Source of the DNA: Epithemia pelagica | Lineage: Eukaryota > Protista > Bacillariophyta | Assembly: GCA_946965045.2 (NCBI GenBank) | Contig: OX337229.1 | Coordinates: 496,001 to 560,000 of the forward strand | DNA length: 64,000 bases | Reading direction: 5' to 3' | Shown: positions 18,576 to 42,914 of the stretch, one piece after another | How the letters are laid out: each line of letters opens with the position of its first letter | Numbering within the stretch: the first letter of the stretch is position 1 | Program-made: the position numbers and the translations under genes | Notes under the pieces: model-generated | The model's database searches: none | Told to the model about the DNA's origin: nothing | Seen by the model: only the letters and a program-made list of their open reading frames with translations

Positions 18576-19955
18576 ATGATGATGATGATGATGAAAGTTT
18601 GGTGGTTTGGTTTCGTTTGGACCACCATCGTTCTCTTGGATGCGACCGTGCACGCCTTTGTACCATCATCGCCCTTGCTAGTACGACGATACGCCACGAA
18701 TACCCCGACAACAACAACGACGGCGCTGTCAGAACAACAACACGCCAATCGTATCGTCGTGGATCCATTGGTTCCTCGCCGTCGTCGTGTGACCAACAAC
18801 AAGAAACCAAAAGATGAACTCGTGGACGTCGACACCACGGTCTTGTTCTTGTTTACCAATCTCGTGCCAACCAGCATAAATCAAACCGTGGAGGAGATGC
18901 AAACCATTGCGACCAAGATGCATCACATTCATATCCGATGGATTGCACAAAAAGGGCTCATTCAACAATTCCAAATGGAAAAACAAGCCGATGCCCAAAC
19001 ATGCCACGACTGCTATGTCCAATGGAGATCCGACCCCTCCTCGGAACGTGGCCTGTTCTGGAAGAGACAACATGAACGTGCTTTGGATCGAGTGCAGGTA
19101 TGGCAGCAAAAACTGGACGCGCATGGCGCTGCCGTCGACAAGCTTGCGCAAAGCCTTCAAGTGTTGGATCAAACGATGGTGATAGCCCAAAGCAAACGGG
19201 ATCAAATGGCGGCTCGAGTTCGAATGGCCCAAGAGACTTTGGAAGAGCATGAGTGTTTTCAACTCGAGGCAGCCCTGAAGAATTCTACAGTGGTGGTGAT
19301 TCCACCACTCCATACCAAGAAGACCACCATCAATGTTCCAACTGGTTCTTGGTCAGCTTCTTTCTCCACAACGACGGCACTACTACTACTACTACATCAA
19401 GCCAACCTCTTGGGTCCATTCTTGGATGTAGCCAAATCTCATGTCCATGTCATGGTATCCAATCGTGCGGAACAACTCATGGATGAGTTCGTCAAGGAGT
19501 TGCAACACGTCAAGGACCAAGTGCTTCTATGGTTTCTGGAATGGCCTGCAACCCTTTGTGTAATGCTGAAAGAAGCGCAAGAACAACACGCGGACAGGGC
19601 CGAGGAATGCTACAAGAATGCCCAATTCATCTTGTCGGCGGAACAATCCATGGACAACAACAACAATACGTCTCTTGCTTCGTTCTGGTTGAAACAAAGT
19701 GAACTTGCGTTGGACAAGGCGATGGCAATCCAAGCACAAATCGACGTGGTGGATGACGCTTCGGACAAGCTGTGTCAAAGCCATGAATGGTTCGATCAAA
19801 CCATCATGACTGCCGCCAGGAACCACAGGGATGAACTGTTCATGAATGCCATTGACCGAATGGAACAAAAACTACAAGCCTTGGAAGCGGCGGCCGATGC
19901 GTACTGGGCCGGAACGGAGAGTTTCGTCCTTCCGGAGAAAAGCCAGTCTATGTAG
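18576..19955 (+). CDS. Tandem double VIPP1-derived protein, copy 1 (plastid-targeted)
   Basis: Signal + VHA-FVP. Module 1: HGAAVDKLAQSLQVLDQ...SKRDQMAARVR...FQLEA. Module 2: HQANLLGPFLDVAKSHVHVMVSN...MEQKLQALEAAA. Both align by eye to the neighbouring VIPP1. Confidence 0.82.
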   Translation: MMMMMMKVWWFGFVWTTIVLLDATVHAFVPSSPLLVRRYATNTPTTTTTALSEQQHANRIVVDPLVPRRRRVTNNKKPKDELVDVDTTVLFLFTNLVPTSINQTVEEMQTIATKMHHIHIRWIAQKGLIQQFQMEKQADAQTCHDCYVQWRSDPSSERGLFWKRQHERALDRVQVWQQKLDAHGAAVDKLAQSLQVLDQTMVIAQSKRDQMAARVRMAQETLEEHECFQLEAALKNSTVVVIPPLHTKKTTINVPTGSWSASFSTTTALLLLLHQANLLGPFLDVAKSHVHVMVSNRAEQLMDEFVKELQHVKDQVLLWFLEWPATLCVMLKEAQEQHADRAEECYKNAQFILSAEQSMDNNNNTSLASFWLKQSELALDKAMAIQAQIDVVDDASDKLCQSHEWFDQTIMTAARNHRDELFMNAIDRMEQKLQALEAAADAYWAGTESFVLPEKSQSM

Positions 19956-20105
19956 GAGTATTTGAACTGTTGCAACTCGAGGCTCCCTGGATTTGGTCCC
20001 TTGCTGTTTTGTAATTTCAATTCGTTGGAGTACCAACCTAGGTAGTAGCCATCTTCTTTTACTATATCTCAAACGGATCGTTTCCCATGCAGACATACTA
20101 GAGGT

Positions 20106-20698
20106 CTACTCTTCATCGGAAGAAGAGCTACTAGTGCTGCTGTCATCCTGGTCATTCGAAATGGGGAGTTCCAACGCATCGTCTTGCAGCAGCAACATGG
20201 TGTTGTCCTGAGGAGCGTCTTTGTTATTGTGTGGTGTAGTAATGGTTTGCGACATGAGATTCTCCGTGGCTTGTGGTTGTTGTATGGGAGACTGGGATCG
20301 CGTTTGAGACAATGCATCTGCTCCACCACCAAAGAGACTCAACAATTCCTCCGTCGATCGTGTCGTGGTGGAATGGGTGGCAGGGACGGGTGCAGCCGAA
20401 ACGGCAAACAAGGACGACGACGACGAAGCTGATGGCGGTGGTTGTGGCGGTTGAGGACTGGTGGTGGTGGTTGCGAACTCTTGAATGGAATGTCGACAGA
20501 TGCGAATGCGAGGGATCTCCACCCTGCTGTGGCACCGTGCCTGGATATTGGGTTGGTGGAGCCGTTGGGCGAGATGCTGCCTCGTATCCTCGGAGGGAGC
20601 AGCAGCAGCAACAACAACATGTCTACCATTGTTCTGGTGGGTGGTGGCGGTTTCCGGATAGGAATTCTTGGGTGGCGGTCCCCTGGAACGAGACGCAC
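20106..20698 (-). pseudogene. 3' fragment (with internal deletions) of the DUF2439 gene at 43068-45143, copy 1
   Basis: SSSSLFAVSAAPVPATHSTTTRSTEELLSLFGGGAD...DDSSTSSSSSDEE* matches the end of 43068-45143. Homology stops at gagacgca (20698). Confidence 0.85.
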
Positions 20699-21646
20699 AG
20701 CCATTGGAAAAGCACTTCAAACTGTTATCCAGGAAATTGGACGTCTTCCAATGAATTTGAACAACTTTGTTGTGGACACTGATTTAGGTGGGGACCGTGC
20801 TGGGTTTCGGTTCTCTCCAAAATGTGACGAAGATGGTTTGGAGTTTCACATTTCGAATCGGTGTACTCCTTGTATTCGAATTCATGCAGTCCCAATTTGA
20901 ACATTCCCCGTGGTAATGTGTTTTTTCTTTTTAAAATCGCAGCGATAAAAAAAGATGGTGAAGCCAGTTCGTTGAAGAATCTTTCACACTTTTCAAACTT
21001 CTTGTAAAATAGGTTTACCCATCGCCTGTCTTTACAAGCAGTGAGGGTTCTATGAGTAGACGCCAACTGCAAACCACTGTCTGTTGTGCTTTCTACATCC
21101 TCTCAGGGCCTCATTGTTGGTTGCCAATTGCTGACCAATGATGCTCTTGGGGAGAACGGGTTGGTACCTTGTTGCTGTCTGTGGTATGTTTAGTTTTGCG
21201 TGGAACGGGGATAACTTTTGACAAACCCAACAACCCAACAACAACCCCCAAGTCTACCTAGAATTGGCGGCATGATCGTTCGTAGCGACACGTGGTATTT
21301 CCAGAGGTGGAGATAGGATGTCCACGTTCAATGGAAACTGCACCGCGCGTCAAATGCCAGCCAGACCATTGTCTGTTCTCTCGGTTCCTGCTGTCTAACG
21401 ACTGCATTTGTCCTCAAGCCTGTGATAACGTGTTCGCTGGGAAATCCGTCAAGGACGCCTCATCTTGGGCTAGGTGATCTATCAGGTAAAACCATTCTGC
21501 AAAATCAACGATTCTGCAAAGTCTCTTGCTATTCTCTTGAGAGAAAGAATCCACAAAGATTTGTTGCAATTCTTGTTTATCTTTTATGGGCGTCGGTGGA
21601 TTGTTGTTCTTGTCGTTGTCAATTGCACAAATTCATTGGTGACAAG

Positions 21647-21738
21647 GGGCAAAACGTCCATGGATGCCTTTGCGAGAATGGAACAAAAAGTCGAAGCCTT
21701 GGAGGCGGCGGCCGAAGCTTCGGCCGAAATGGGATCCC
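21647..21738 (+). pseudogene. VIPP1 3' fragment, left part (interrupted by the copia insertion)
   Basis: Identical to VIPP1 17881-17964 and ends at the TSD atccc. Confidence 0.9.
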
Positions 21739-22453
21739 AGTGAAGACATAGCTATTCTACGACGTCTGTGTCCGATCAACTAGTCCAGCTAGCACACCTA
21801 GTTTATCGTCCAGGTTTGAGACATCTGTTACAAACCGCTGTATGCGACACAAACCTTGACGTGTATCTAAGACTCATTACGTGTACTTAAATAGAAGTAG
21901 GCCGTTGAACGGACAGACGGACCCGTAACAGGAATTTGTGGATAAGCATAACTATGCCCTCTACTATTCGGAAGAGATGTACGCTGGACGAGCTACACTC
22001 GGAAGTAAGAGCTACATAAATCGAGGATCTAGAAAAGAACGTGATCCTCGAGAATAGAACTTGATCTTCATCAACAGGAGATCCAACCCAAGATGGAACA
22101 CATTCCTCTATGGAGTAGAACAAGTTCTATTAGTCCCTAATCGTAACTCCATAGTACTTGTCCACTGAAGTAAGGAATACGTTCCCCATCTACGACTAGA
22201 TTTTGGGGGATGATGGCCGAACGATCCGAGAGGAGCCAAACCATCTCAAGATGAAAAACACAATCTTTAGTTTAATCTCACTTCTTTATAAACATCCAGT
22301 TTGATAATCAAACTTGTTTTGTAACGGAGAAGTCGACCTATTACGCTGATAGAAGGTGAGGGCCCCATCGTCTATTGTGCATATAGGTTGACCTAAAGAA
22401 ACTACTGTATCTAACCCTATCGTCTAGAGTTAGCTTTCTACCCTCCTTTAACT
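21739..22453 (+). repeat. 5' LTR (AGTGAAG...CTTTAACT)
   Basis: Direct repeat of 31401-32115; I noticed only two mismatches, both in the first 25 bp. Confidence 0.97.
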
Positions 22454-22467
22454 GGTTATTGAGCCCA
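22454..22467 (+). promoter_or_regulatory. Primer-binding site GGTTATTGAGCCCA (half-tRNA-iMet type)
   Basis: Directly follows the 5' LTR. It resembles the GGTTATG(G/A)GCCCAG PBS of copia elements primed by the 5' half of initiator tRNA-Met, with one extra T. Confidence 0.75.
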
Positions 22468-22848
22468 AACAGAGGCTGACGAACCCTACGCTTTTATCTG
22501 TCGATCGATCCCAAGGACAAGACATCGAGCCTGTCCCTTCTACTAGCTCTGGTGGATTATTGCGTCTACCCGACCGCTTTGCGCGCTGAAGCTATTTAGC
22601 TTCTCCCTGACTCCAGCTCCAACACGGCTGACGACCAAGACTCCCCAACCTCCTCCAGTGGAGTGGGAAGTTTCGACTTACTATCCTCTCTTGATTCCGA
22701 CGAACAACCCCAGCAAGAAACCACTGTCACTGATACAGGAGTTCCAGGGGCGCGGATTGAAAACAACGAGGAGGACACCAACAACGACCAACAAACCGGT
22801 AGATTGCAAAACTCCGACGGGTTGATTGGTGAGTCAAAACAAACAAGC

Positions 22849-25800
22849 ATGACCGAGGAGGAGGACGCTCCACCCACTGTGTTTAAGCCGACCAAGCCCA
22901 AGATCGGCGGCATCTTCCAGAGCAAACGAGATGAGTTTGTCGTCTGGACTGGCGGGAAACCCAAAGCAGATTGGAAAGGGTTAGACCCAACCGCAAGACA
23001 AGAATACTTGCGTGCACTTCAAGTACGTACCTTCAATGACAAGCGGTTCAAGGACCGAGTGACAGGACCTGAAGACAAGTTTGATAAAAAGAAAGGAGAC
23101 TTTAGTCGATTGAAGGACGACATTGAGCAACACCTTGTCATGCATGGCATGGACTCGATCGCGTACTTACGTAATCCCCTTGACCCTACCGAAATGCTCT
23201 TCATTGTGACTGAACATCCCAAATATACTCCCAGCAAGGTCAAGGAGTTGATGGACGAGCAGATGACTCATTACGATAAGTATGACCGCAACAATGATGT
23301 GAGCGCACGAGATTTCCTGTTCGACTGTCTTGAAAAGGGATTCAAAAGGGAAGTGCAGGATCAGGCACGGGACGTCAAATCGTTCCCCGAGCTTTTCATG
23401 GTGCTTGTGAAAATAGTGACACATGACTCACCGCAACACTGGGAACAGGTGAAGAAAGATATGAGAGGATTACTCCCTCAAAAATATCCGGGCCAAGACA
23501 TAATGGCACTCACCAAAGACTTCTCGCAGAAGGCGCGACCGCTGATCGCCGCTGGGTTGTACGATCACACCCTGACCGCTAGCTTGATGACCAATATACT
23601 ACGTGCCGAGTGGCCAGACACTCCCAAGTTTGAGCTCATGTACTTGGCCAAGAATCTAAACGACACCATCATTGAAGTTCGCTTCCAGGATCGCACCACT
23701 GCTGACCTGAAAATGCGAAAAGAAAAACTGTGGTATACCGATATCATTGAAACAGCAAACACAAAATATTTGGTTAGTGTCAAGGATGGCGAGTGGCGCC
23801 CCAAGCAGCATGCCACTGACTCCAAAGCGCCACCTACCTCATTTGGAGCAAACAAAGCAATCGCCAAAACTACTCCGTCCCCTCGACAGAATCGCAGTGG
23901 TGGTCATAAGGGTGCCATGACCCAGGCCAGCTTGAATGCCCTCATCAATTCGCTGAAACACCCTCCTGGCCATAATCCCACCCCTTCTCCATCCACTGGA
24001 CCACGCAATCCTTCGACCGGTCACCGCGACAAGGGGGGAAAGAAGACACCCCAACACAAGAAGACACCCCAACACAAAAAGAATATGACTCGAGTTGACC
24101 GTTCAAAGGTGCATCCGTGGCGGCTTGTGCCTCCGGCCTCTCATGAACCTGAATCCATGATCGTAGACGGTGTTATGTATTATTGGTGTGCCATCTGCAA
24201 ACGATGGAATGACACCCATGGGACCGCCAAGCATATTGTTGGATACAAGAAAAACAAGCACGGCACCAAGGAATCCCGAGCCCACAAGCTCGAGTTTGAT
24301 GTGTCCGCTTGGAAAACGGAGTTTGATTGTTGTGTGCTTTGTAATGACCAAGACTGTAATACCAACGACTGGAAAGATCTTCCAGATTGCATGTCTCTTG
24401 AAGAAGACGACAAAGGATATACCAATACACAGGACTTCGACTTGTGCGCCTTTGTCATGCAATGCGACTTCATGGAAGTACACGGAACCTCCAATTCTTC
24501 CAACATGATTCAACACCCAGTCAACAATCCCAACTTTGATCACCACTCGGCAGACACATCCTCCCTGGAATGGTCCTCCCATTCAAATAAGGATCCTCCA
24601 CAGAACCAAGAAGAAACAAATTGTTGTGTGGACCATATCACCGAAGAACTGAAAACAGAGGGAGGAACTCCTCTGGGGTTGATTGTTGGGTCTGGAGAGT
24701 CAATTGTTGCATCCAATGCGTCCTTCCCTTCTCTACCACCTCTTGTACGTCGTCATTGCTGTGAAAAGAGATGTGGTAGTGAAACAGAAGCCGAAGCAAA
24801 TACATTGTATTTCGACGAATGGGAGGATATCAACTCCTGGTATGACACGTCAAGCAAGAACCAAAACATGGACACGGATCTAAGCATGGCCATCCAAACT
24901 GTTGAAGCAAACACAGCTGCACACGAAGCGAGCTTTGACAGCTCTCAACTCAACCTTGGCAGTGACGACACACATATGCGTTCCCACAACACAACAATGA
25001 GCTCGATCCTCGATACGACACAGGACAGCTCGGTTTTGAGCGATGACAATATCTCAATGACCCCTCTCAAGAACTTGCAGAGAGGAAAGATTGCAAGTGA
25101 TGAGGAACGAGAGGATAGGAAACCTGCAGCAATGCAACCAGACATCTCACCTATCCAGATGGACCACACTTCACCTCCTCGAGTCAATCTCCAACCTCGT
25201 CCTTCTGTGAGAACTTTGGAAGAATGGGCAAGAAGCTTTCAACCAGGACTACGTCCTCCTGCAACAGATCCACGGATCTCCATAGAGGAAGAAGCAGCAA
25301 AAGCAAGACGAGATGGAATGCGTTATGAGAGAGCGCAGTACACCGTTTACGCTCTGCAACACCAAGAGCCGAAACTTACCATCGCACAGGCTTACCAAAG
25401 AGTAAAGAACGAAGAATGGTACCTTGGATGGTATTTGGATGGTACGAGGATCCCACACCACCCAAATCCAGCTCCTGTCTGGCCTGGACTCGAGATTCAA
25501 TCCGATCCGCCACCTTGCCTTCTTCGGGCTCGCATTATGGAACATCGACCAATTGAACGAGGATACCATGCACAATTTGTTGCCCTTCTCAATCAAAGCA
25601 ACGCCACGCCGTCACCAGTCAATATCTCAGATCCGCCCTCTGTAAATCTCAGTTCAAGAAGCAAGGCATGTGAGACTTTGGAACAGCAAGCAGAAGACAT
25701 GGCTGACACAGCTGATGGAGAACGATCTTTCTCCTCGACGTCGTTCGTCGACACAAGCAATCTTGGAGAACAATACGTTCCCACTGACGCTTCTCACACA

Positions 25801-28800
25801 ACAAACGAAACAGATATCACTTACCCACACATCAATCCTTTTGCGCAATACTATGCCAAGATGGCACTCATTGAAATTGCTAACTCGGACTCGAGCTCCG
25901 ACGACGAAGAGATGACTGATGCAAACGAAAATTTGGAAAGTGAAGATGAGATCGACGAGAACAACGAGTCCCCTTTTGTCTCACTCTGTGACAGTATCAT
26001 CCAATACCTCACGTGTGTCCCCCACAGTATTACTGTGATCCATAATGTACTGGGGAAGCACGGGTTTGACCAAGATCCAGACAAGATGGACGTCCTCTTA
26101 ACCAACGCGACTGAGGAATTAGTGACAACACGCCTTGCATTCAACCGTGAGTCTGATCCAGCTACACGTGGAGAGCTGGAAATCAAGCTACACAACCAAG
26201 GCGAGCTTGTTAAAGAACTATGGATTTACACACATGCACGTGAACAGGTTGAAGGATCACCCTATTCCAATCGGAGTCTACCTTTGACTCTCATTCACGA
26301 ATTTGCTTGGGAGTTAGCGGCCGGCGACCTTGCTCCTGACATCCCGACGCCGGTCTGCCCTGATCGTGTTCGTTCTGATGGATCTAGCAGTACAGTCTAT
26401 CCATTACAATCACAGACGCCTCGTGACAGTCCTAGCAAAGACTTTCCGGATTTCGATCAGTTCGAAATGAACTATGCACCTTATAGTACTTTCTCGGACA
26501 CCACGCCCGGAGATACACGTGGCCCTACACGTGTAAGCAACCACACTGCGCCTGTCGGGTCGGCACAAACGCAGGGCGAGACAACCACAATTCCTCCTTT
26601 CCCTTGGCACATGTTTGCGGCTAGCTTCACGACCCTTCTTGTGGTCCTATCCAGTATCCTTTGGATCCTACCTGTTCCTCACCCTCTGGAACATGCAAAC
26701 AATGCAACTATTTCAGGTTTTAAATCTATTTGGTCGGGAATGACCCATCTGTACTTGGGAATCCGAGACTTGACCTACGGCGGATCTGCCCTTGTTTGGA
26801 GTGTTCTTATTCACCCATCGTGCCAACCTGCTTTCTTCACCTGGTTGTGCTGTTGGTTGGCTGCCTTCATGGTTGCACCCTGGGAATCGCCTAGCGTGGC
26901 ACACACAGCCCCTATCCGTTCTTTATTCTCACCCCAGCCACAGCGCCCATCCGCTGTGAACCATTTCCGAGTCACTCTCCACCCACGTCGCCAAGCTCCA
27001 CCACCTTTGTTCGGGAACACCCTTCTTTTCCACACCTTCTGGTGCAAGATTGTTGGATCCATCCTTAATGGGCGTGTCCTTTTCGACTGCCTCCGTTTGA
27101 TTGTTGTGTCTGTTGGTAAATTGTTGCTTTCTGGCAGGGCAAATCGCTCGAAAGAGGGAGAACACCAACCTTTGTCCCCTCGACGAGCCGGTCCCAAACG
27201 CAAATCCGTTTTCCGACCAATTCACCCTGCTCCAGTCACCAAGCGAGCACGAATGCGGACTCGACTGACACGGGTTAACCGTCCATCCTTGGAACAACGA
27301 CTTCGTCAACAACGAATCCATTCCAAGAAACGACGCAACCCACAAGAAGCATACTGTACCACACCCATGGACCGCTATCAGAACCCCCATCGCGCCAACC
27401 ATCCATCGAACCCGATGAACCATCATCGGAATAGGAACTCTAATAACCGCCCGTCGACAAATCCTGTCGACATCTTCAGGAACACACGATCTGCAAAGGA
27501 ACGAGAAATGTTCGCTCTTGCAGCGTGCCTTGAGGGACCCACACTCTGCGATGTCTTCAGGACCTTGGGGAGCACACCACACCACCAATGGGAACAAATT
27601 ACACAAGCTGGACTCCAAGCTTGCCTTCAGGATCCTCTCGCTTTACGAAGCGCCATGCCACACAATGCATCCTATCCAATTATTTGGGACAGCGGAGCCA
27701 GCATCTCGATCACAAACCAGACTCAAGACTTCATCGGAACAATCCAGCCCTTGCCAAACTTCAATGTAAAAGGAATCGCCAACAGGATGAAGGCAACAGG
27801 CCGAGGTTTTGTCTTATGGTCTGTGCTCGACACCGAAGGGAAGCTCAGACAGCTCAAACTCCCTGCCTTTCTTGTGCCAAAGACCAACGCAAGACTCCTG
27901 TCAACACAAAGTCTGCTCCAAACATACGACGGTGAGAAAATCATCCAAGATGGAAAGACAATGGTGCTTACAGGAATGCCCGGTGACAAGAAACGAACGC
28001 AAATCACAATTCTCATCAATCCGTCCAACAACCTGCCCATGTCGTATGGGTACGACCACAAAGAAGTAAAGAAAAGCGCACACGCTCTCAGCTCCATCAT
28101 TTCAGAAACGTCACAGCACAACATGAATTTAAGCGAAGCGCAACAAGAATTGGTACGTTGGCACAATCGCTTCGGCCACCTGTCGTTTCGAAAAGTTCAA
28201 TTTGTTATGAGAACCGGAGTGCTCGCAACCAGTGAACACAAGCGTCGACTCCACATCAAAGCATCCACTCTCACGAACTTACCTCTTTGTGCAGCCTGCC
28301 AATATGGCAAACAAAAGCGAAGACCGTCACCTGGAACCACAAGTTCCATTGTGAAAGATCGCAAGGGGATAACAAAAGCAGAAAATTTATATCCTGGACA
28401 ATGTGTCAGTGTCGATCATTTCGTATGCTCTACTAAGGGAAGAAGATTCAATACTCAGGGTTCATCCGCGTCTAAGGATATGTATATGGGTGGAGCAATA
28501 TTCGTAGACCACGCTTCGGGTTACACCTGGATTGGCTTTCAGAGCCACTTAAATACTCATGAAACTCTACACGTTAAAAATTCCTTCGAGTTATTTTGTA
28601 GAGACGTTGGAGTTATGCCCTCTCAGTATCTCACCGATAATGGATCGGCATTCACCTCTGCCAAATATACAGAGTCCCTACAAACTTTTGCTCAAACATA
28701 TCGCTTTGCTGGAGTAGGGGCTCGTCATCACGCCGGTATAGCCGAGCGGGCCATACAAACAATTATGTCTATAGCGCGCACCATGATGCTACACGCCGCT

Positions 28801-31400: not shown

Positions 31401-32115
31401 AGTTAAGACATAGCTATTCTACAACGTCTGTGTCCGATCAACTAGTCCAGCTAGCACACCTAGTTTATCGTCCAGGTTTGAGACATCTGTTACAAACCGC
31501 TGTATGCGACACAAACCTTGACGTGTATCTAAGACTCATTACGTGTACTTAAATAGAAGTAGGCCGTTGAACGGACAGACGGACCCGTAACAGGAATTTG
31601 TGGATAAGCATAACTATGCCCTCTACTATTCGGAAGAGATGTACGCTGGACGAGCTACACTCGGAAGTAAGAGCTACATAAATCGAGGATCTAGAAAAGA
31701 ACGTGATCCTCGAGAATAGAACTTGATCTTCATCAACAGGAGATCCAACCCAAGATGGAACACATTCCTCTATGGAGTAGAACAAGTTCTATTAGTCCCT
31801 AATCGTAACTCCATAGTACTTGTCCACTGAAGTAAGGAATACGTTCCCCATCTACGACTAGATTTTGGGGGATGATGGCCGAACGATCCGAGAGGAGCCA
31901 AACCATCTCAAGATGAAAAACACAATCTTTAGTTTAATCTCACTTCTTTATAAACATCCAGTTTGATAATCAAACTTGTTTTGTAACGGAGAAGTCGACC
32001 TATTACGCTGATAGAAGGTGAGGGCCCCATCGTCTATTGTGCATATAGGTTGACCTAAAGAAACTACTGTATCTAACCCTATCGTCTAGAGTTAGCTTTC
32101 TACCCTCCTTTAACT
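31401..32115 (+). repeat. 3' LTR (AGTTAAG...CTTTAACT)
   Basis: Direct repeat of 21739-22453, followed by the TSD atccc. Confidence 0.97.
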
Positions 32116-32359
32116 ATCCCTGTCCGCGTCTCTACCGGAAGCCAGTCTGGAACGGGAATTTTTGCAACTCGAGGCCATGGATTCGGTCGACCAGGAGTTG
32201 ATGCGGCTTAAGGGCAGCATGGTAGAGGACAACGAAGCAACCAACAACAAACCCAAAACACCCATGGCCTTGGAACCAAGCCAAGAAAAACGCATCGAAC
32301 AAGAACTCCAAGTCCTAAAAGAGAAATCGGTCTCGAACATTCCTGTCCAATGGGAGTAA
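32116..32359 (+). pseudogene. VIPP1 3' fragment, right part
   Basis: Matches the VIPP1 3' end through ...SNIPVQWE*. Confidence 0.9.
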
Positions 32360-32723
32360 GTGTAGTGTTCCTTCTTTCTCCTATACTACTTTAGTCCAAA
32401 GGGTGAATAATATCGTAGCTTCGAGTTTACATAGTAGTTCTCGGTGAATTGAGTCGGCCTTCAAGTCACGAGTCTTTAATCATGACACGACTACATCTCA
32501 TTGGGTAACATAGGAGGCGGTTAAAGCTCACTCTGCACGCCAAACAATGGTCATCGCGGGATCAGATCTCTTTTACTCCCACACTTGTGGCAGAGGACGA
32601 CGTGTAGAGGCACCCATAATTTCGTAACTCACGGAACGAACAAGAGCTCTTCTGGACTGTGCAAGGACAATATTCTACTCTAGAGAGTGATCCAACAGAG
32701 GACGGGGACGTTGAACCAGGATA

Positions 32724-34103
32724 ATGATGATGATGATGATGAAAGTTTGGTGGTTTGGTTTCGTTTGGACCACCATCGTTCTCTTGGATGCGACCGTGCA
32801 CGCCTTTGTACCATATTCGCCCTTGCTAGTACGACGATACGCCACGAATACCCCGACAACAACAACGACGGCGCTGTCAGAACAACAACACGCCAATCGT
32901 ATCGTCGTGGATCCATTGGTTCCTCGCCGTCGTCGTGTGACCAACAACAAGAAACCAAAAGATGAACTCGTGGACGTCGACACCACGGTCTTGTTCTTGT
33001 TTACCAATCTCGTGCCAACCAGCATAAATCAAACCGTGGAGGAGATGCAAACCATTGCGACCAAGATGCATCACATTCATATCCGATGGATTGCACAAAA
33101 AGGGCTCATTCAACAATTCCAAATGGAAAAACAAGCCGATGCCCAAACATGCCACGACTGCTATGTCCAATGGAGATCCGACCCCTCCTCGGAACGTGGC
33201 CTGTTCTGGAAGAGACAACATGAACGTGCTTTGGATCGAGTGCAGGTATGGCAGCAAAAACTGGACGCGCATGGCGCTGCCGTCGACAAGCTTGCGCAAA
33301 GCCTTCAAGTGTTGGATCAAACGATGGTGATAGCCCAAAGCAAACGGGATCAAATGGCGGCTCGAGTTCGAATGGCCCAAGAGACTTTGGAAGAGCATGA
33401 GTGTTTTCAACTCGAGGCAGCCCTGAAGAATTCTACAGTGGTGGTGATTCCACCACTCCATACCAAGAAGACCACCATCAATGTTCCAACTGGTTCTTGG
33501 TCAGCTTCTTTCTCCACAACGACGGCACTACTACTACTACTACATCAAGCCAACCTCTTGGGTCCATTCTTGGATGTAGCCAAATCTCATGTCCATGTCA
33601 TGGTATCCAATCGTGCGGAACAACTCATGGATGAGTTCGTCAAGGAGTTGCAACACGTCAAGGACCAAGTGCTTCTATGGTTTCTGGAATGGCCTGCAAC
33701 CCTTTGTGTAATGCTGAAAGAAGCGCAAGAACAACACGCGGACAGGGCCGAGGAATGCTACAAGAATGCCCAATTCATCTTGTCGGCGGAACAATCCATG
33801 GACAACAACAACAATACGTCTCTTGCTTCGTTCTGGTTGAAACAAAGTGAACGTGCGTTGGACAAGGCGATGGCAATCCAAGCACAAATCGACGTGGTGG
33901 ATGACGCTTCGGACAAGCTGTGTCAAAGCCATGAATGGTTCGATCAAACCATCATGACTGCCGCCAGGAACCACAGGGATGAACTGTTCATGAATGCCAT
34001 TGACCGAATGGAACAAAAACTACAAGCCTTGGAAGCGGCGGCCGATGCGTACTGGGCCGGAACGGAGAGTTTCGTCCTTCCGGAGAAAAGCCAGTCTATG
34101 TAG
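32724..34103 (+). CDS. Tandem double VIPP1-derived protein, copy 2
   Basis: 459 aa; differs from copy 1 at two residues (AFVPS/AFVPY, SELAL/SERAL). Confidence 0.82.
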   Translation: MMMMMMKVWWFGFVWTTIVLLDATVHAFVPYSPLLVRRYATNTPTTTTTALSEQQHANRIVVDPLVPRRRRVTNNKKPKDELVDVDTTVLFLFTNLVPTSINQTVEEMQTIATKMHHIHIRWIAQKGLIQQFQMEKQADAQTCHDCYVQWRSDPSSERGLFWKRQHERALDRVQVWQQKLDAHGAAVDKLAQSLQVLDQTMVIAQSKRDQMAARVRMAQETLEEHECFQLEAALKNSTVVVIPPLHTKKTTINVPTGSWSASFSTTTALLLLLHQANLLGPFLDVAKSHVHVMVSNRAEQLMDEFVKELQHVKDQVLLWFLEWPATLCVMLKEAQEQHADRAEECYKNAQFILSAEQSMDNNNNTSLASFWLKQSERALDKAMAIQAQIDVVDDASDKLCQSHEWFDQTIMTAARNHRDELFMNAIDRMEQKLQALEAAADAYWAGTESFVLPEKSQSM

Positions 34104-34253
34104 GAGTATTTGAACTGTTGCAACTCGAGGCTCCCTGGATTTGGTCCCTTGCTGTTTTGTAATTTCAATTCGTTGGAGTACCAACCTAGGTAGTAGCCAT
34201 CTTCTTTTACTATATCTCAAACGGATCGTTTCCCATGCAGACATACTAGAGGT

Positions 34254-34846
34254 CTACTCTTCATCGGAAGAAGAGCTACTAGTGCTGCTGTCATCCTGGT
34301 CATTCGAAATGGGGAGTTCCAACGCATCGTCTTGCAGCAGCAACATGGTGTTGTCCTGAGGAGCGTCTTTGTTATTGTGTGGTGTAGTAATGGTTTGCGA
34401 CATGAGATTCTCCGTGGCTTGTGGTTGTTGTATGGGAGACTGGGATCGCGTTTGAGACAATGCATCTGCTCCACCACCAAAGAGACTCAACAATTCCTCC
34501 GTCGATCGTGTCGTGGTGGAATGGGTGGCAGGGACGGGTGCAGCCGAAACGGCAAACAAGGACGACGACGACGAAGCTGATGGCGGTGGTTGTGGCGGTT
34601 GAGGACTGGTGGTGGTGGTTGCGAACTCTTGAATGGAATGTCGACAGATGCGAATGCGAGGGATCTCCACCCTGCTGTGGCACCGTGCCTGGATATTGGG
34701 TTGGTGGAGCCGTTGGGCGAGATGCTGCCTCGTATCCTCGGAGGGAGCAGCAGCAGCAACAACAACATGTCTACCATTGTTCTGGTGGGTGGTGGCGGTT
34801 TCCGGATAGGAATTCTTGGGTGGCGGTCCCCTGGAACGAGACGCAC
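34254..34846 (-). pseudogene. 3' fragment of the DUF2439 gene, copy 2
   Basis: Same translation as 20106-20720. Confidence 0.85.
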
Positions 34847-35833
34847 AGCCATTGGAAAAGCACTTCAAACTGTTATCCAGGAAATTGGACGTCTTCCAAT
34901 GAATTTGAACAACTTTGTTGTGGACACTGATTTAGGTGGGGACCGTGCTGGGTTTCGGTTCTCTCCAAAATGTGACGAAGATGGTTTGGAGTTTCACATT
35001 TCGAATCGGTGTACTCCTTGTATTCGAATTCATGCAGTCCCAATTTGAACATTCCCCGTGGCAATGTGTTTTTTCTTTTTAAAATCGCAGCGATAAAAAA
35101 AGATGGTGAAGCCAGTTCGTTGAAGAATCTTTCACACTTTTCAAACTTCTTGGAAAATAGGTGTACCCATTGCCGGTCTTTACAAGCAGTGAGGGTTCTA
35201 AGAGTAGACGCCAACTGCAAACCACTATCTGTTGTGCTTTCTACACCCTCTCATGGCCTCATTATTGGTTGCCAATTGCTGACCAATGATGCTCTTGGGG
35301 AGAACAGGTGGGTGCCTTGTTGTTGCTGTCTGTGGTATGTTTAGTTTTGCGTGGAACGGGGATAACCTTTGACAAACCCAACAACCAACAACAACCCCCA
35401 AGTCTATCTAGAATAGGCGGCATGATTGTTCGTAGCGACACGTGGTATTTCCAGAGGTGGAGCTATAGGATGCCTACGTTCAATGGAAACTCCACCACGC
35501 GTCAAATGCCAGCCAGACCATTGTCTGTTCTCTCGGTTCCTGCTGTCTAAAGACTGCATTGGTCCTCAAGCTTGTGACAACGTGTTCGCTGGGAAATCCG
35601 TCAAGGACGCCTCATCTTGTGCTAGGTGATCTATTAGGTAAAACCATTCTGCAAAATCAACGATTCTGCAAAGTCTCTTGCTATTCTCTTGAGAGAAAGA
35701 ATCCACAAAGATTTGTTGCAATTCTTGTTTATCTTTTATGGGCGTCGGTGGATTGTTGTTCTTGTCGTTATCAATTGCACAAATTCATTGGTGACAAGGT
35801 TGTCCACATAGATTCCACTGGATCCCATGATAT

Positions 35834-36511: not shown

Positions 36512-36737
36512 TCCGCGTCCCTACCGGAAGCCAGTCTCGAACGTGAATTCTTGCAACTCGAGGCCATGGATTCGGTCGACAAGGAGCTGATGCGGCTCAA
36601 GGGAATGGTGCAGGAAAACGAAGCAACCAACAACAAGCCTAAAACACCCAAGGCCTTGCAACCAACAAGCCAAGAAAAGCGCATTGAACAAGAACTCCAA
36701 GCTCCAAGTCAATCGGTCACGAGAGCATTGTAGTGTT
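36512..36737 (+). pseudogene. Diverged VIPP1 3' fragment (third fragment)
   Basis: LQLEAMDSVDKELMRLKGMVQENEATNNKPKTPKALQPTSQEKRIEQELQ is similar but not identical to the VIPP1 C-terminus; the end is scrambled. Confidence 0.85.
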
Positions 36738-37659
36738 TAGAGCTGGGTCAAGCAACAGCTTTTTTCTGCTGGAGAACTCAAGCGCTTGAGCGCTTGAGCT
36801 AGGACCAAATTCAAGCGCTCAAGCGCTCAAGCGGCAGCGAACAGGGCTAACACGGGAAACTATGGCAATAGACTCATTGCAATACCTCTAGTGAAATGGT
36901 AACTTCTCTTATTATGTAACTGATATGCAATGGAAACTCTGTTAGAAGATACTTCCCCAGTTCTCACGCAAAAAATGGAGATCAGAAACTGTTGAAGGAT
37001 CAAAGTATGATTGTTTTGGCGTGATTATCAGACCAGCAATACTGAATGCCCGTTCAGAGGAGGCTGCTGTTGCCGGCATGGCAAGATACTTAAGAGCAAG
37101 TCACCAAATATTGGGAAACTCACTTGCCTTTCCTTTCCACCAAGAGAGCAAAGGATCTTGTGCAACTTTCGTCCCAGCCTTGTTCACGTAGTACATTTTA
37201 AGTCCTGCCGTTGTACGGAACTTGTCAATTTCAAGACGGCAGATGGTAGCATAGGATACCCCTCCACTATAAATCTTCCTGGAGTCTCCATTGTCATCCT
37301 CTTCGTCATCCATCATTTCTCCCAGCGTGTCACTGACTTCAAACTCCACTTCTGTCCTTGCCCTCTTGGTTGGAGAAGGAACTTCCTGCTATTAGTTCCT
37401 CTTCGGACACTTGCTCATCATTATCATCATCTGGATGGTATGATGACTCATTCTCATCATCACTGGAGTTCTCGGGCATTTTGGAAAGGTGTGAAGGGCA
37501 GATGAATGCGGGTTTTTGCTACGTTTAGGGACTTTCCGGTAGTCCGGGTGCTTGAGCGCTTGAGCTCTCAAGCAACACCCTTTCTGCGCTGGAGCTCCTC
37601 AAGCGCTTGAGAGGTCAAGCGCATGAGCGCTTGAGCGCTTGACGCTTGACCCAGCTCTA
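36738..37659. mobile_element. Non-autonomous (internally deleted) hAT DNA transposon, 922 bp
   Basis: Perfect 16-bp TIRs TAGAGCTGGGTCAAGC / GCTTGACCCAGCTCTA; 8-bp TSD GTAGTGTT (36730-36737, 37660-37667); subterminal repeats (t)caagcgct / agcgcttga at both ends. Confidence 0.95.
36942..37350 (-). pseudogene. hAT transposase C-terminal dimerisation-domain remnant
   Basis: DPLLSWWKGKASEFPNIW*LALKYLAMPATAASSERAFSIAGLII, with an in-frame TGA at 37101-37103. Confidence 0.88.
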
Positions 37660-37759
37660 GTAGTGTTCCTTCTGTATGTGTCATTGGTTCTACTTTTGAC
37701 ATAGTATGAAAAATTCTAAGCGGGGAGGCCGCAGACGACTGTGGTGGAAGAAGGGAAGA

Positions 37760-38030
37760 AGTCGCCCAAAGGGCAAGGGGTGTGCCAACAACGAGCAAGA
37801 TTCGCTTCTGTTCTTATGGTGATGTGGAACACAGGAAAGGTGTGCCTGTCATCGATGGTGAAGAAAAGTCAATCGCACATAGATTACATGACAAGCCCCG
37901 ATAAGTATCTTTTGCTGCCAAACAACAACAAGAACAATCGTCGCTGGTGCTGCTGAGTTCGGTACGAGGCACAAAGGATGCCGTGATCGAGGTCGAACAC
38001 TGCTGTTCGACAGTGTTGTTGTCGTGCAAC
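37760..38030 (-). pseudogene. Decayed paralogous pieces of the Kelch gene 5' region
   Basis: 37830-37900 (...caatcgcacatagattacatgacaagcccc) resembles 40015-40090. 37920-37990 resembles the HASVVL...VVVLGG segment at ~39740-39800. Confidence 0.55.
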
Positions 38031-38708
38031 AAGGTTTCGGTGGAACTGGCATTGAGGGGGCAAGACATCGCGATGGAGAGCGGCTTGGCCAATGACAATA
38101 ACGAGGGAGAACATGACAAGTTCCTTTCCACCAACCAACACAAGATAGTTCCATTATAGCCAGCCTCCGTTAATGGAACCTCGTTGACATCGACGCCCTC
38201 CAGAATCCAGAGTATTGTCTCGAATCGCTCTCAATCATGACAGGATCAGCATGGCTTCACTCTCTCGTCCTTCTCCTATTGTTCGAAAGGACATGCCGAT
38301 CCACCCTTTTTGTCCATGTCGGATTCGTCCTCATCTTGGTGCTCCTCTCCTACTCATCGTGCTCTGTGTCATCGCTGTAGATCGAACTTAAGTATGAACA
38401 AGACCGGATCTACGAAGAATAAAGCAACATTCAGACTTTGTGTCGCGTAAAGTTCCATGACACCGCCCCAAAGCACCAGAATCTTTTCTCATGATCGTAC
38501 AAACCCCGGTGGTGGCACTGTCCCACAACTGTGTCAGGTCATGGCCGAAGCGTAGTACCACTTGTAGAGGTACACAAATCGGGTCGTTGACAACAAATAA
38601 GCACCTTCTTTCTTGCAACATGTTCTTTCTACTTTTGAGTTACTACTTACAAGGTTCTACGATTGCAATCGAATGTAGAAAACAAGTCAACCACTCGAAA
38701 ACAAACGG

Positions 38709-39911
38709 CTAGGTTTCATCATTCCCTCTATCATTTTGGCATGTATTGGTCCTTACTCGTTTGCGAGCTAATGTCGATGGGGAGAAGGGTGAGATATCAG
38801 CATCTCGGATACCCATACCTTCAAGAGAATGATACCATCCGTTCGATTGCTGCTCACAGAGACGACGAAAACACCACGTATTCCTATCCAGTAGTGGTAA
38901 TGTTGCACATGAAGGATTGGGATATCCACCAATCACGGCAACTTGATTGGCAACAGTCACCGTACTGCAGCCATTGCGGTGATTATCCGATGGTGGGAGA
39001 TACCAAACGCGGTTGCTTTGCGTGTCCAAGACTTCCCCGGTTGAATTGTTCCATCCTCCCGCCACCACCAGACAAGATCCCACGGCAACCATTGCACACG
39101 ACCTTCGTGTATTGGAAAGCCTCAACTCCGAATGAGTGGTCCAAAGGGTCGAGAAGGAAATGAATGTCGAACCAGTTTCCTTTTTTGTCTCATGATTGTC
39201 ACAGGGTGTTGCATAGTCCAAATACTCCACCGAGTCAAGATTGCCATTATCGTTACGACCTCCAACGACAAAGATGCGGTGACCAATAACCGCACTGGCA
39301 CACCATTGTCGTTTAACAGTCATAGATGGTCCCGCAATAACAGTGTGGTTCATGGTATCAATAATATCAACCGACGACAAATAGCGACCGTTGTAATAGC
39401 CACCCATTACAACGATGTATCGGTTGTGAACCGCGACAGCACAACATCCTGATCGTGGCGTTGATAAGCGACAATTCAATGTCGTCCAGTTCATCTCGTG
39501 TGTGATGCTGGTTGTCAAAGATGATTGCAGCAAATAATTGGCATCAATTTGTTCGATACAATCCAAAGGTGCTCCAGTGTCTCCTCCCATCACGTAAATG
39601 CCGCCATTGCACACAACAGCGGCATGTCCATCACGTTTCTGGTTCATGCGTGGCCCTTCTCGCCACTGCTTGTTTGATTCTGCCAAGTTTAATACATGAA
39701 TGGAATCGAGCTCGCCTTGCCCCGGGTGATATCCGCCCAACACGACGACGGTTTGTTCTTGGTTGTTATCGGTATGATTCAGTACGACCGAAGCATGGCG
39801 GTAACGCCATCCACCCTCAAGAGGAGGCCAGTCCTCGAAATTCCATTCAGGTGTCTCGTCTAACAGGACAAGGCCCGACTGCCATGCTTGTTCTTTCAGT
39901 GTCGTTGTCAT
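38709..39911 (-). CDS. Kelch-repeat protein (ORF open to 40058; likely start MTTTLKEQ)
   Basis: Repeated GG...W Kelch blades: VVVLGGY, GPRMNQKRDGHAAVVCNGGIYVMGG, IVVMGGYYNGRYLSSVDI, IFVVGGRN. Confidence 0.88.
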   Translation of the reverse strand: MTTTLKEQAWQSGLVLLDETPEWNFEDWPPLEGGWRYRHASVVLNHTDNNQEQTVVVLGGYHPGQGELDSIHVLNLAESNKQWREGPRMNQKRDGHAAVVCNGGIYVMGGDTGAPLDCIEQIDANYLLQSSLTTSITHEMNWTTLNCRLSTPRSGCCAVAVHNRYIVVMGGYYNGRYLSSVDIIDTMNHTVIAGPSMTVKRQWCASAVIGHRIFVVGGRNDNGNLDSVEYLDYATPCDNHETKKETGSTFISFSTLWTTHSELRLSNTRRSCAMVAVGSCLVVAGGWNNSTGEVLDTQSNRVWYLPPSDNHRNGCSTVTVANQVAVIGGYPNPSCATLPLLDRNTWCFRRLCEQQSNGWYHSLEGMGIRDADISPFSPSTLARKRVRTNTCQNDRGNDET

Positions 39912-40416
39912 GGTCACGGCGCTTGACGATGTCGACAAGAAAGGGCAGCACGAGAGGCTGTTTGTAATAGAGCAACGCGTGGAAGCTTGTTGCTTTTTTG
40001 CGTGGAGACCGCGCGACAGAAAAGGTGTTCCTGTCCTGCGTACGATGGTGAAGGGCAATCAATCGCACATAGATTTCATGACAAGCCCCCAAAAGGAGTA
40101 TGATGAGGAGGAGCAGGACCGTCCGTGGACGATGAAGATTTGACCCATTCGCAAGATGGCGATGATGATTACAATGATCCGCAGTTGATGGTGGTGGCCC
40201 AAGCGGTGCGGAGTGACACAGTCAAAAAAGTTTTCAGCAACCACAACTCAATTCGAAACGACGGGTGGTGGATGAAGATTCCGAATTGGATCCCAACTCC
40301 GATCGCAGTGGAAGACTATATTTGGATCCGAATACGATCCTTCGGAACAACGTTCGCCACCCACCACGACGACGACGACGAATGGACACTTGAATGATCA
40401 CCAGGACGACAATGAC

Positions 40417-40935
40417 GCCGATGTTCGACGACCGGGATGGGGCGGTCGATGGTTTTATCTGTCCTCTTTCTTTTCCATTGCCTCGATTGGAGCCTTTTCC
40501 TATCTCATGGTTTCGTGAAAGGAGATTATTGAAAATACCTTGGGCATTCCATCGGTTATCAGGGAATTGACCGTCTTGGCGGCTGGAACTTCAGTGCCAG
40601 ACTTGTAGTCCAGTGTCATTGTCGCTCGCCGCGGATCGGGAGATATGGCAATCAGCAGTTCGATTGGGAGAAATATTTTTGACATTTTGGTTGGGTTGCC
40701 CATTCCCTGGATCCTGTTTACGGCGTGGCCGAGCAAACCGAGTATTGTGGAAATTGAATCGGAAAATATTTGGATTTCCATTATTGTCTTGTTGGGCATG
40801 TTGGTCTTTGTGATTGTCGCCATTCATTGTCAAGGATGGAAATTGACCAAAACGCTGGCCATGCTCATGCTGCTCTTTTATGCCGGTTCCTTGGCGCAAG
40901 CCATTGTCTTGGAAATACCCTTTGAAACCTGCACG
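40417..40935 (+). pseudogene. K-dependent Na/Ca exchanger (NCKX/SLC24-like) C-terminal fragment
   Basis: PDVRRPGWGGRWFYL...[46 protein letters not shown] (alpha-2 repeat), with in-frame stops at 40516 and 40606. No 5' half. Confidence 0.85.
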
Positions 40936-41540
40936 GACAAGGAAAGAAAGCGAGTGCAGCATAGGCTCTTGACAAGGATACAGCAACTCTTGGCACAAGT
41001 TTTGGGTGGCCAACATGACTCCCAAAAGAAACAAGAGCTCAAGGAAGGTATTACTGTAGAGCCGGATGCGTTGTTTAGTACTGGAGGAAAGAGTGGAAAG
41101 AACACGGACAAACGAACCCCTACTCCGAATGCGGTGGAACAACAAAAGAAGAAGAAGACAATGACCACTTGGAAGATTACAGTAGGAGTAGTAACTACGA
41201 TGACGACGACGACGACAACTGCCAACAGCGTCACCGAGATATCGTAGCTTCGAGTCTAGGTAGACATACTAAATCTCGGCTAATTGAGTCGATCTTCAAG
41301 TCACGAGTCTTTGATCATGACACGACTACATCTCATTGGGTATGATAGGAGGAGCGCACTCTGCAGGTCATCGCGGGATCAGATCTCTTTTACTCCCACA
41401 CTTTTGGCAGAGGACGACGTGTAGAGGCACCCATAATTTCGTAACTCACGGAACGAACAAGAGCACTTCTGGACTGTGCAAGGACAATATTCTACTCTAG
41501 AGAGTGATCCAACAGAGGACGGGGACGTTGAACCAGGATA

Positions 41541-42914
41541 ATGATGATGATGATGATGATGAAAGTTTGGTGGTTTGGTTTCGTTTGGACCACCATCGTT
41601 CTCTTGGATGCGACCGTGCACGCCTTTGTACCATATTCGCCCTTGCTAGTACGACGATACGCCACGAATACCCCGACAACAACAACGACGGCGCTGTCAG
41701 AACAACAACACGCCAATCGTATCGTCGTGGATCCATTGGTTCCTCGCCGTCGTCGTGTGATCAACAACAAGAAACCAAAAGATGTACTCGTCGACGTCGA
41801 CACCACGGTCTTGTTCTTGTTTACCAATCTCGTGCCAACCAGCATGAATCAAACCGTGGAGGAGATGCAAACCATTGTCGCCAAGATGCATGACATCCAT
41901 GCCGAATGGATGGAGAAACAAGATCGCTTCCAAGAATTCTATTCGGAACAACAAGCCAAGGCCCAGAAACACCACGACCGGTTGGTCAAATGGCGGTCCA
42001 ACCTCTCCATGGAACAAGCCCTGGACTCGAAGAGAGAACATGAACGTGCTTTGGAAAGTGTACAAATAGTTCAAGAAAAAATGGACTTGCATGGGGCTGC
42101 CGTCGACAAGCTTGCGCAAAGACTTGAAGTGTTGGATCAACAATTCTCAGAGGCCCAAAGCAAACGAGATCAAATGGCGGCTCGAGTTCGAATGACCCAA
42201 GAGACTTTGGAAGAGAATGAGCGTTTTCAACTCGAGGCAGCCCTGAAGAATTCCACAGCGGTGATTCCACCATTCCATACCAAGACCACCACCACCAATG
42301 TTCCAACTGGATCTTGGTCATCTTCTTTCTCCACAACGACGGCACTACTACTACATCAAGCCAACCTCTTGGGCCCATTCTTGGATGTAGCCAAATCTCA
42401 TGTCCATGTCATGGTATCCAATCGTGCGGAACAACTCATGGATGATTTCGTCAAGGAGTTGGAAAATATCAGGGACGAAGTGTTTGTCACGTGTCTCAAA
42501 TGGACTACGACCCTATGTGAAATGCTGAAACAAGAGAAAGAACAACACGAGGACAGGGCCGACGAATACGACAAGAATGCCCGTTTCATCTTGTCGTCCG
42601 AACAAACCATGGACAACAACAACAATACGTCTCTTGTTTCGTTCTGGGTGAAACAATGTGACCGTGCGTTGGACAAGGCGGATGCAATCCAAGCACAAAT
42701 CGACGTGGTGGATGCCGTTGAGGACAAGCTGTTTCAAAGCCATGATTGGTTCGATCAAACCATCATGACTGCTGCCAGGAACCACAGGGATCAACTGTCC
42801 ATGAATGCCATGGTCCGAATGGAACAAAAACTACAAGCCTTGGAAGCGGCGGCCGATGCGTACTGGGCCGGAACGGAGAGTTTCGTCCTTCCGAATAAAA
42901 GCCAGTCTTTGTAG
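41541..42914 (+). CDS. Tandem double VIPP1-derived protein, copy 3 (diverged)
   Basis: 457 aa with the same architecture as 18576-19955. Homology with unit 1 starts at 41239 (matches 18262). Confidence 0.82.
   Translation: MMMMMMMKVWWFGFVWTTIVLLDATVHAFVPYSPLLVRRYATNTPTTTTTALSEQQHANRIVVDPLVPRRRRVINNKKPKDVLVDVDTTVLFLFTNLVPTSMNQTVEEMQTIVAKMHDIHAEWMEKQDRFQEFYSEQQAKAQKHHDRLVKWRSNLSMEQALDSKREHERALESVQIVQEKMDLHGAAVDKLAQRLEVLDQQFSEAQSKRDQMAARVRMTQETLEENERFQLEAALKNSTAVIPPFHTKTTTTNVPTGSWSSSFSTTTALLLHQANLLGPFLDVAKSHVHVMVSNRAEQLMDDFVKELENIRDEVFVTCLKWTTTLCEMLKQEKEQHEDRADEYDKNARFILSSEQTMDNNNNTSLVSFWVKQCDRALDKADAIQAQIDVVDAVEDKLFQSHDWFDQTIMTAARNHRDQLSMNAMVRMEQKLQALEAAADAYWAGTESFVLPNKSQSL

Follow-up and report, generated by a model that had tools for sequence, protein, structure and literature searches.

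Tandem VIPP1-derived fusion genes beside VIPP1 in a raphid pennate diatom

Introduction

VIPP1 is indispensable to thylakoids, both for their biogenesis and for their repair, and it is an open question by what means the polymers of this protein are initiated, limited, and disassembled in vivo. A natural two-hairpin derivative without the polymerisation helix would offer a tool that needs no engineering and might also regulate VIPP1. Herein, we analysed a 64,000-nucleotide stretch of Epithemia pelagica (GCA_946965045.2, contig OX337229.1, positions 496,001 to 560,000; hereafter the window), in which three long open reading frames (ORFs) lie beside the VIPP1 gene. The locus raises the question of whether these ORFs are two-module derivatives of VIPP1, where they came from, and what their products might do. 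On balance, we lean towards a VIPP1-derived fusion family of local origin, whose products would be plastid-imported, non-polymerising accessories.

Architecture of the fusion genes

A sequence-only reading of the window had reported three intact ORFs, and all three were recovered exactly, at 18576-19955, 32724-34103, and 41541-42914, encoding 459, 459, and 457 amino acids (aa), respectively. We named them fusion genes A1, A2, and B. A second contig of ENA assembly ERZ21939226 (ctg1269l, hereafter L001; the window is ctg1342l of this assembly) is collinear with the window at 95-97% identity and holds VIPP1 and two fusion genes, A (455 aa) and B (437 aa). Because L001 has no counterpart of A2, the three genes of the window are two diverged paralogues and one recent haplotype- or strain-specific copy. 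The earlier count of three ORFs therefore stands, but not as three independent members, A2 being a recent duplicate 99% identical to A1. The parental gene and the fusion genes are laid out as follows.

17204..18211, plus strand: parental VIPP1 gene, 335 aa, with signal peptide, transit peptide, and α0-α6; 364 bp upstream of A1.
18576..19955, plus strand: fusion gene A1, 459 aa (ORF, BLASTP, and hhalign).
18576..18656, plus strand: A1 signal peptide, aa 1-27, its last residues …VHA followed by Phe28 (ASAFAP-like motif); aligned with the signal peptide of VIPP1; by inspection.
18657..18836, plus strand: A1 transit-peptide-like region with a degenerate α0 remnant, aa 28-87; hydrophobic moment (muH) 0.23-0.28, with prolines.
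18837..19280, plus strand: A1 module 1, aa 88-235, with an α1-α2/3 hairpin, α4 deleted, and an α5N remnant; hhalign probability 98.2%, E=4e-14.
19281..19379, plus strand: A1 linker, aa 236-268, from the VIPP1 transit-peptide end; predicted to be disordered, with a predicted local distance difference test score (pLDDT) of about 30.
19380..19955, plus strand: A1 module 2, aa 269-459, with α0, an α1-α2/3 hairpin, a deletion of ~26 aa, α4, and a stop before α5; hhalign probability 98.7%, E=2e-16.
32724..34103, plus strand: fusion gene A2, 459 aa, with 2 aa differences from A1.
41541..42914, plus strand: fusion gene B, 457 aa, with 79% aa and 89% nucleotide (nt) identity to A1.

The parental VIPP1 matched Pfam PspA_IM30 at E=3e-42 (145 bits) and the Vipp1 chains of the PDB at E=1e-37. 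When the fusion protein was compared with the local VIPP1 by BLASTP, two non-overlapping alignments were obtained, one at residues 3-228 (E=2e-16), which takes in the signal peptide, and the other at residues 272-456 (E=2e-14). In hhalign comparisons with a diatom VIPP1 profile, module 1 aligned over α1-α3 and module 2 over α0-α4, with the probabilities listed above, and the two modules matched each other with 94% probability and 31% identity. Because the sensitive profile-profile and BLASTP comparisons agree, both modules are taken as VIPP1-derived, which bears out the description of the ORFs as single-chain, two-module VIPP1 derivatives beside the parental gene. The modules are about 31-35% identical to VIPP1, and the only non-family matches of an exhaustive profile search were single-domain PspA_IM30 proteins.

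In module 1, α1-α3 continues as far as MAARVRM…ETLEE, after which the sequence skips to FQLEA at the start of α5, indicating the loss of α4; what is left of α5 is an invariant 11-aa remnant, FQLEAALKNST. The jump had been noticed from the sequence alone, but the clean loss of the amphipathic helix proposed with it was not found. The α0 equivalent of module 1 is degenerate rather than deleted (HANRIVVDPLVPRRRRV plus an insertion), interrupted by proline, and no longer amphipathic (muH 0.28, charge -3). An 11-aa insertion in the aa 28-87 region of A1 is not present in copy B of L001. Module 2, as the alignments confirmed, keeps the α0-like segment ANLLGPFLDVAKSH, has lost ~26 residues around MAARARTAKTT, and terminates after the α4-like MEQKLQALEAAA, just short of α5. 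At the hairpin tip of module 2, A1 carries an NNNN insertion. The linker aligned to the end of the VIPP1 transit peptide (…TTTALLLLLHQ/ANLL vs …STTVLH/ANLL), a likeness that had also been pointed out before.

The polymer-contact helices are missing, as the sequence-only reading had stated. A complete α5 is found in neither module, and the module 1 stub is out of register with F197/L200 of Nostoc (F270/L273 of the local diatom VIPP1). Helix α6, the C-terminal extension typical of VIPP1 as compared with PspA, is absent from both modules, and module 1 also lacks α4. By inspection, the presequence consists of a hydrophobic core, the site …VHA/FVP with Phe at +1, and an S/T/P/R-rich stretch of ~25 aa without an acidic residue. 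It fits a heterokont bipartite plastid signal with an ASAFAP-type motif, and the plastid-type presequence proposed earlier is thereby upheld. Each fusion gene starts with a run of ATG, with 1 to 7 copies across the five genes, forming a triplet microsatellite at the initiation site (18576-18596, 32724-32744, and 41541-41564 in the window; 11394 and 15906 in L001). An antisense ORF at 18729-19313 (minus strand) was dismissed, as it is not conserved in copy B.

AlphaFold2 (AF2) was run with an enriched alignment, in which MAFFT put all VIPP1 rows on module 2, so that module 1 was backed by family members only. Two long helical hairpins were predicted (85-152/157-236 and 265-357/361-447) with a disordered linker between them; the pLDDT of the hairpins was 60-88 (60-82 for the module 1 helices), and the mean was 56.5. 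A model built from the five family members alone had a pLDDT of 43.8 and was unusable. The top Foldseek matches were Vipp1 and CHMP1B chains (probability 0.99, with an E value of only 0.04-0.3). This result is consistent with a Vipp1/ESCRT-III fold, though weakly, and is partly circular for module 2.

Origin of the family at the VIPP1 locus

The gene order in Epithemia clementina is the same as that in the window (SAP/TPR … VIPP1, ZGRF1-like on the opposite strand, S1/P1 nuclease, DENN), and only 228 bp separate VIPP1 from the ZGRF1-like gene, with no fusion between them. A search of other diatoms for the fusion, suggested by the sequence-only reading, came back empty. In Epithemia clementina, the fusion proteins were used as tblastn queries over ±10 kb around VIPP1 and matched VIPP1 itself alone, and a second relative (ERZ25042306) likewise had VIPP1 only over the same distance. 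No fusion was found elsewhere by a word-indexed search of 5.8 billion proteins, by an exhaustive hmmsearch of 1.84 billion (1.84e9) representative proteins, or in the JGI metagenome contigs scanned. The closest VIPP1s were an ENA protein (65%) and that of Epithemia clementina (64%), and the further matches were all from diatoms, including Amphora, Cylindrotheca, Nitzschia, Seminavis, Fistulifera, and Mayamaea.

In a tree built from the modules without presequences, both modules fell in one clade (100/98) with the Epithemia and local VIPP1s, the local VIPP1 being their closest neighbour (92/68). The stems leading to them measured 6.5 and 7.2 substitutions per site, compared with 0.02-0.5 for the VIPP1s; as two long branches meet here, no inference is drawn about a sister relationship between the modules. 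At the signal peptide, the fusion aligned with the local VIPP1 and not with those of other diatoms. Because synteny with Epithemia clementina, the null searches, the tree, and the signal-peptide likeness point the same way, they show, at the level of sequence comparison, that the local VIPP1 gave rise to the fusion here at its own locus, once the Epithemia clementina lineage had split off, and that the fusion then changed very fast. A lineage-specific gene family in this raphid pennate diatom, arising through partial VIPP1 duplication and fusion, is well supported by these comparisons. It represents a clean, datable gene birth, the empty ancestral site of which is preserved in Epithemia clementina.

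Predicted role of the fusion proteins

In Nostoc, Vipp1 without α5/α6 forms neither rings nor filaments, and α0, which mediates membrane binding, is N-terminal (PMC8281802). As neither module has α5, the fusion proteins would be barred from canonical polymerisation, and it is reasonable to regard them as incapable of Vipp1-type polymerisation alone. We propose, with low confidence, a plastid-imported non-polymerising accessory that would modulate VIPP1 assemblies or bind membranes weakly. The fusion protein would be imported into the plastid stroma, where, without α5 in either module, it would form no Vipp1-type rings or filaments of its own. Its two hairpins, flexible linker, and one weakened amphipathic α0 would then make it an accessory that could dock on VIPP1 assemblies or membranes by hairpin side-packing; it is conceivable that the hairpins pack side by side with VIPP1 polymers. 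The effect would be to limit or tune VIPP1 assembly, rather than to remodel membranes by itself.

Several results weigh against this account. Pfam PspA_IM30 (PF04012) was unmatched by full-length A1 and B even at E<=10, so that the two matches per protein anticipated from this model failed to appear, and HMMER searches of the PDB sequences (phmmer/hmmsearch, with the full protein and each module profile) gave no Vipp1/PspA match. For this reason, homology was shown through BLASTP to the local VIPP1 and hhalign. When 60 invariant positions were defined from six stramenopile VIPP1s, each module kept 13-22 of them, with 60-80% lost. The relative placement of the two modules is not confidently predicted, the predicted template modelling score (pTM) of the AF2 model being 0.31. 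The α0 of module 2 has lost two Arg and gained Gly-Pro, with muH 0.35 (reached by 165/5000 shuffles) and charge +1, vs muH 0.61 and charge +2 for the α0 of VIPP1. The hairpin tips, the sites that receive α5 when Vipp1 polymerises, have evolved faster than any other part, and the tip of module 2 carries an insertion; tips altered in this way argue against canonical docking to VIPP1. The family is known from genes alone, in one ENA assembly (ERZ21939226). Finally, the ratio of nonsynonymous to synonymous substitution rates (dN/dS) between A and B was 0.9-1.15 (bootstrap 95% confidence interval 0.66-1.57; this and the other ratios by the Nei-Gojobori method), and the A/B substitutions were spread evenly over the codon positions (58/44/48), a picture that neutral drift gives as well.

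Maintenance of the reading frame

Between the window and L001, dN/dS was 0.6-0.7 for the same paralogue and 0.14 for VIPP1 (dN 0.016, dS 0.116). By these measures, the canonical VIPP1 constraint has been lost. The fusion genes could accordingly be effectively neutral young duplicates, a functionless by-product of VIPP1 rearrangement heading to pseudogenisation, with frames still open from the short time elapsed or from gene conversion. We consider this doubtful, while giving it real weight. It would account for a dN/dS of ~1 without a third-position excess, for the loss of most VIPP1-invariant residues and of the Pfam signal, for the absence of the family from the nearest sequenced relatives, and for the unstable locus with its retrotransposon, insertions, and gene fragments. 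If the ORFs are drifting, their value would be smaller, as a case of a coiled-coil ORF staying open at dN/dS ~1.

What speaks against neutrality is the state of the frames. All five copies across the two contigs are open. When the observed 150 substitutions were placed at random, only 10 of 5000 simulations were stop-free, which gives P of about 0.002 under neutrality for the A/B divergence alone, and the far larger divergence from VIPP1 also accumulated with the frame unbroken. The indels in the coding sequence (CDS) were of 3 and 6 nt, all in frame, whereas those in the flanks were of 1, 2, 3, 6, 7, 9, 11, and 12 nt. The presequence is conserved, as is a 33-aa block that comprises the linker end and the α0 of module 2 and is invariant in all five copies. 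The guanine-cytosine content by codon position and the frame-specific codon likelihood of the fusion ORFs are gene-like, so that the codon signature is retained. Together, these observations indicate that coding capacity has been maintained. The sequence-only reading had itself named a dN/dS near 1 as damaging; such a value was found between A and B and weakens the case, but the disrupted alleles named with it were not seen in any of the five copies, and the second module is present.

Selection under which the frame stays open and the targeting sequence is preserved, with the helical hairpins changing at dN/dS ~1, is therefore well supported. On this sequence evidence, the genes are a real, unusual young family that stays open and evolves almost at the speed of neutral DNA. 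Hypermutation resembling repeat-induced point mutation is unlikely, given that transitions were not in excess (56 transitions vs 94 transversions).

Possible stronger roles for two joined modules

A bolder version of the accessory role would make the product a covalent ESCRT-III-superfamily pseudo-dimer, imported into the plastid and lacking α5, that assembles together with VIPP1, capping or tuning the VIPP1 rings and filaments, with hairpin surfaces under diversifying selection. We think this unlikely. In module 2, alignment columns 331-405 contain ~21 nonsynonymous vs ~1 synonymous differences, which hints at positive selection without reaching significance. The idea of capping or seeding VIPP1 polymers, put forward by the sequence-only reading, presumes canonical interfaces, and it is weakened by the few invariant positions kept, the fast-evolving tips, and the loss of two Arg from the α0 of module 2. 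A parallel is offered by ESCRT-III heteropolymers and regulators such as IST1-CHMP1B, where one hairpin subunit, a diverged one, assembles with a polymerising partner and modulates it, as proposed here, and CHMP1B is among the fold matches. IST1 and CHMP1B, however, are two polypeptides and have kept the α5 contacts, whereas co-assembly of the fusion with VIPP1 is a proposal.

It is also improbable, more so than the pseudo-dimer, that the fusion is a polyprotein precursor, cut after import just before ANLL into two products, one the α1-α3 hairpin by itself and the other an α0-α4 protein whose amphipathic helix would sit free at the N-terminus. The linker does align with the VIPP1 transit-peptide end, including the probable stromal processing site, and its predicted disorder would leave it accessible. 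The junction and α0 (LLLHQANLLGPF…) form the longest invariant block in the five copies (pN 0.000), and cleavage that frees the α0 of module 2, N-terminal in Vipp1 (PMC8281802), would explain this invariance. However, dS in the same block is low, so that gene conversion could account for it. Plastid polyproteins occur in euglenids and dinoflagellates; we know of none in diatoms.

Comparison with known systems

Returning to the accessory family, its closest known relative is VIPP1/IM30 itself (PF04012; cyanobacteria and plastids). Each fusion module shares with it the α1-α2/3 coiled-coil hairpin, at hhalign probabilities of 98%; module 2 also has the α0-like N-terminal segment and α4, the presequences of both go back to one ancestral gene, and the genes lie next to each other. 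Unlike VIPP1/IM30, the fusion has two modules per chain and no α5/α6, with α4 missing from module 1 and ~26 residues deleted from module 2. It also differs in keeping 13-22 of 60 invariant positions, in its sub-Pfam score, and in a dN/dS of ~1 vs 0.14.

In bacteria, PspA_IM30 tandem repeats are present in <2% of homologues, and fused adjacent PspA/Vipp1 paralogues occur occasionally in cyanobacteria (Ravi et al. 2024, PMC11237479). Such proteins (for example, BAG06015.1) resemble the fusion in having two PspA-type domains per polypeptide that arose by tandem gene duplication. By description only, they are prokaryotic and Pfam-recognised and have complete domains, whereas the fusion is eukaryotic, nuclear-encoded, and highly diverged, with a plastid presequence and complementary truncations. 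The tree implies that the fusion originated independently of them. The bare tandem PspA architecture is thus not new, and the sequence-only reading, which knew of no described tandem VIPP1, has to be qualified as far as the catalogued bacterial and cyanobacterial tandems are concerned. It held in a narrower sense, in that no eukaryotic, nuclear-encoded, plastid-targeted PspA tandem with complementary truncations was described in the literature searched.

VIPP2 of Chlamydomonas is a protein with a single, complete PspA_IM30 domain. Like this and other single-domain paralogues, the fusion is a lineage-specific extra gene derived from VIPP1 that may act beside it; it differs in being a truncated tandem.

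Copy history and structure of the locus

The duplications that produced the copies left traces throughout the region, which are listed below together with the insertions.

17881..21647, unstranded: duplication unit copy 1, with the VIPP1 3' end, A1, and a ZGRF1-like fragment (self-blastn).
20106..20720, minus strand: ZGRF1-like gene fragment, 83% match to 43813-44013; repeated at 34254-34868.
21647..21738, plus strand: start of duplication unit copy 2, a VIPP1 3'-CDS fragment 100% identical to 17881-17972 (self-blastn).
21739..32115, plus strand: Ty1/copia-type long terminal repeat (LTR) retrotransposon in unit copy 2, with LTRs at 21739-22453 and 31401-32115.
32116..35799, unstranded: remaining part of unit copy 2, with 99.0% identity to 17968-21647, opening with a VIPP1 3' fragment at 32116-32359.
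36512..36705, plus strand: older VIPP1 3' fragment (88% identity), at which the B duplication unit begins.
36701..41262, unstranded: insertion absent from L001, with a Kelch-repeat gene and a Na/Ca-exchanger fragment.
43068..45143, minus strand: complete ZGRF1-like gene, which ancestrally lay next to VIPP1 on its downstream side, as it does in Epithemia clementina.

An older tandem duplication of a unit from the VIPP1 3' end to part of the ZGRF1-like gene gave rise to paralogues A and B, which share 88-89% nt identity; its debris includes the VIPP1 3' fragment at 36512-36705 and the ZGRF1-like fragment at 20106-20720. A recent tandem duplication of 17881-21647, found on the window contig only, produced A1 and A2, which are 99.0% identical. 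The 204-aa ORFs on the minus strand at 20106-20720 and 34254-34868 are ZGRF1-like leftovers of these segmental duplications. Besides A2, L001 also lacks the retrotransposon and the 4.5-kb Kelch/Na-Ca insertion.

The element between A1 and A2 has LTRs of 715 bp that are 99.7% identical, a 5-bp target-site duplication (ATCCC), and an integrase domain ahead of the reverse transcriptase (RVT_2), features that place it in the Ty1/copia class. Its insertion postdates the A1/A2 duplication (LTRs 99.7% vs units 99.0%). The suggestion that the A1/A2 pair is an assembly artefact, in which two haplotypes, one with the copia insertion, were joined in tandem and each truly has two fusion genes, is very improbable and would touch copy number only, not the nature of the family; the 99.0% identity does lie within the range of contig-to-contig divergence (95-97%) and the second contig has A and B only, but the unit junction, where a copy of 17881-17972 follows 21647, occurs in neither simple haplotype, the target-site duplication within copy 2 is clean, and LTRs younger than the duplication give a consistent order of events.

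Exchange among the copies was visible as mosaic patterns. In the A copy of L001, 14 sites in a row at CDS nt 585-630 are B-type, and the N-terminus of the B copy is A-type in the window but not in L001, patterns that show gene conversion among the fusion copies. VIPP1 was considered as the donor of the 14-site block to the A copies of the window, but the identities (39/51 vs 35/51) were unconvincing; A/B conversion in the other contig, L001, is the simpler reading. When 17204-19955 of the window was compared with 10001-12761 of L001, dS was uneven, at 0.116 for VIPP1 and 0.023 for the adjacent fusion A. This suggests gene conversion, or else contigs that come from strains or sibling genomes and are not simple haplotypes. 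Upstream of the fusion genes, a stretch of 300 bp (18262-18575 vs 41239-41540) is 95.3% identical between paralogues, vs 89.0% in the CDS, which is compatible with a conserved promoter or gene conversion.

Other features of the window

The main copia ORF (22663-30468, 2601 aa) has ~1800 N-terminal residues without a Pfam match ahead of the gag-pre-integrase, integrase, and RVT_2 domains, far exceeding the usual gag-protease length. The insertion at 36701-41262 sits between the old VIPP1 3' fragment and fusion gene B and contains an intact Kelch-repeat gene (38709-40058, minus strand) and the Na/Ca-exchanger fragment (40645-41247, plus strand). The genes round about are of ordinary eukaryotic nuclear kinds, their ORFs long and without interruption, namely ankyrin, ETF-QO, SAP/TPR, NF-YA, S1/P1 nuclease, DENN, and LETM1. 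Near the end of the window, a 971-aa ORF without a Pfam match (55540-58455, minus strand) includes six near-identical tandem repeats of 177 bp (59 codons) at 56842-57900.

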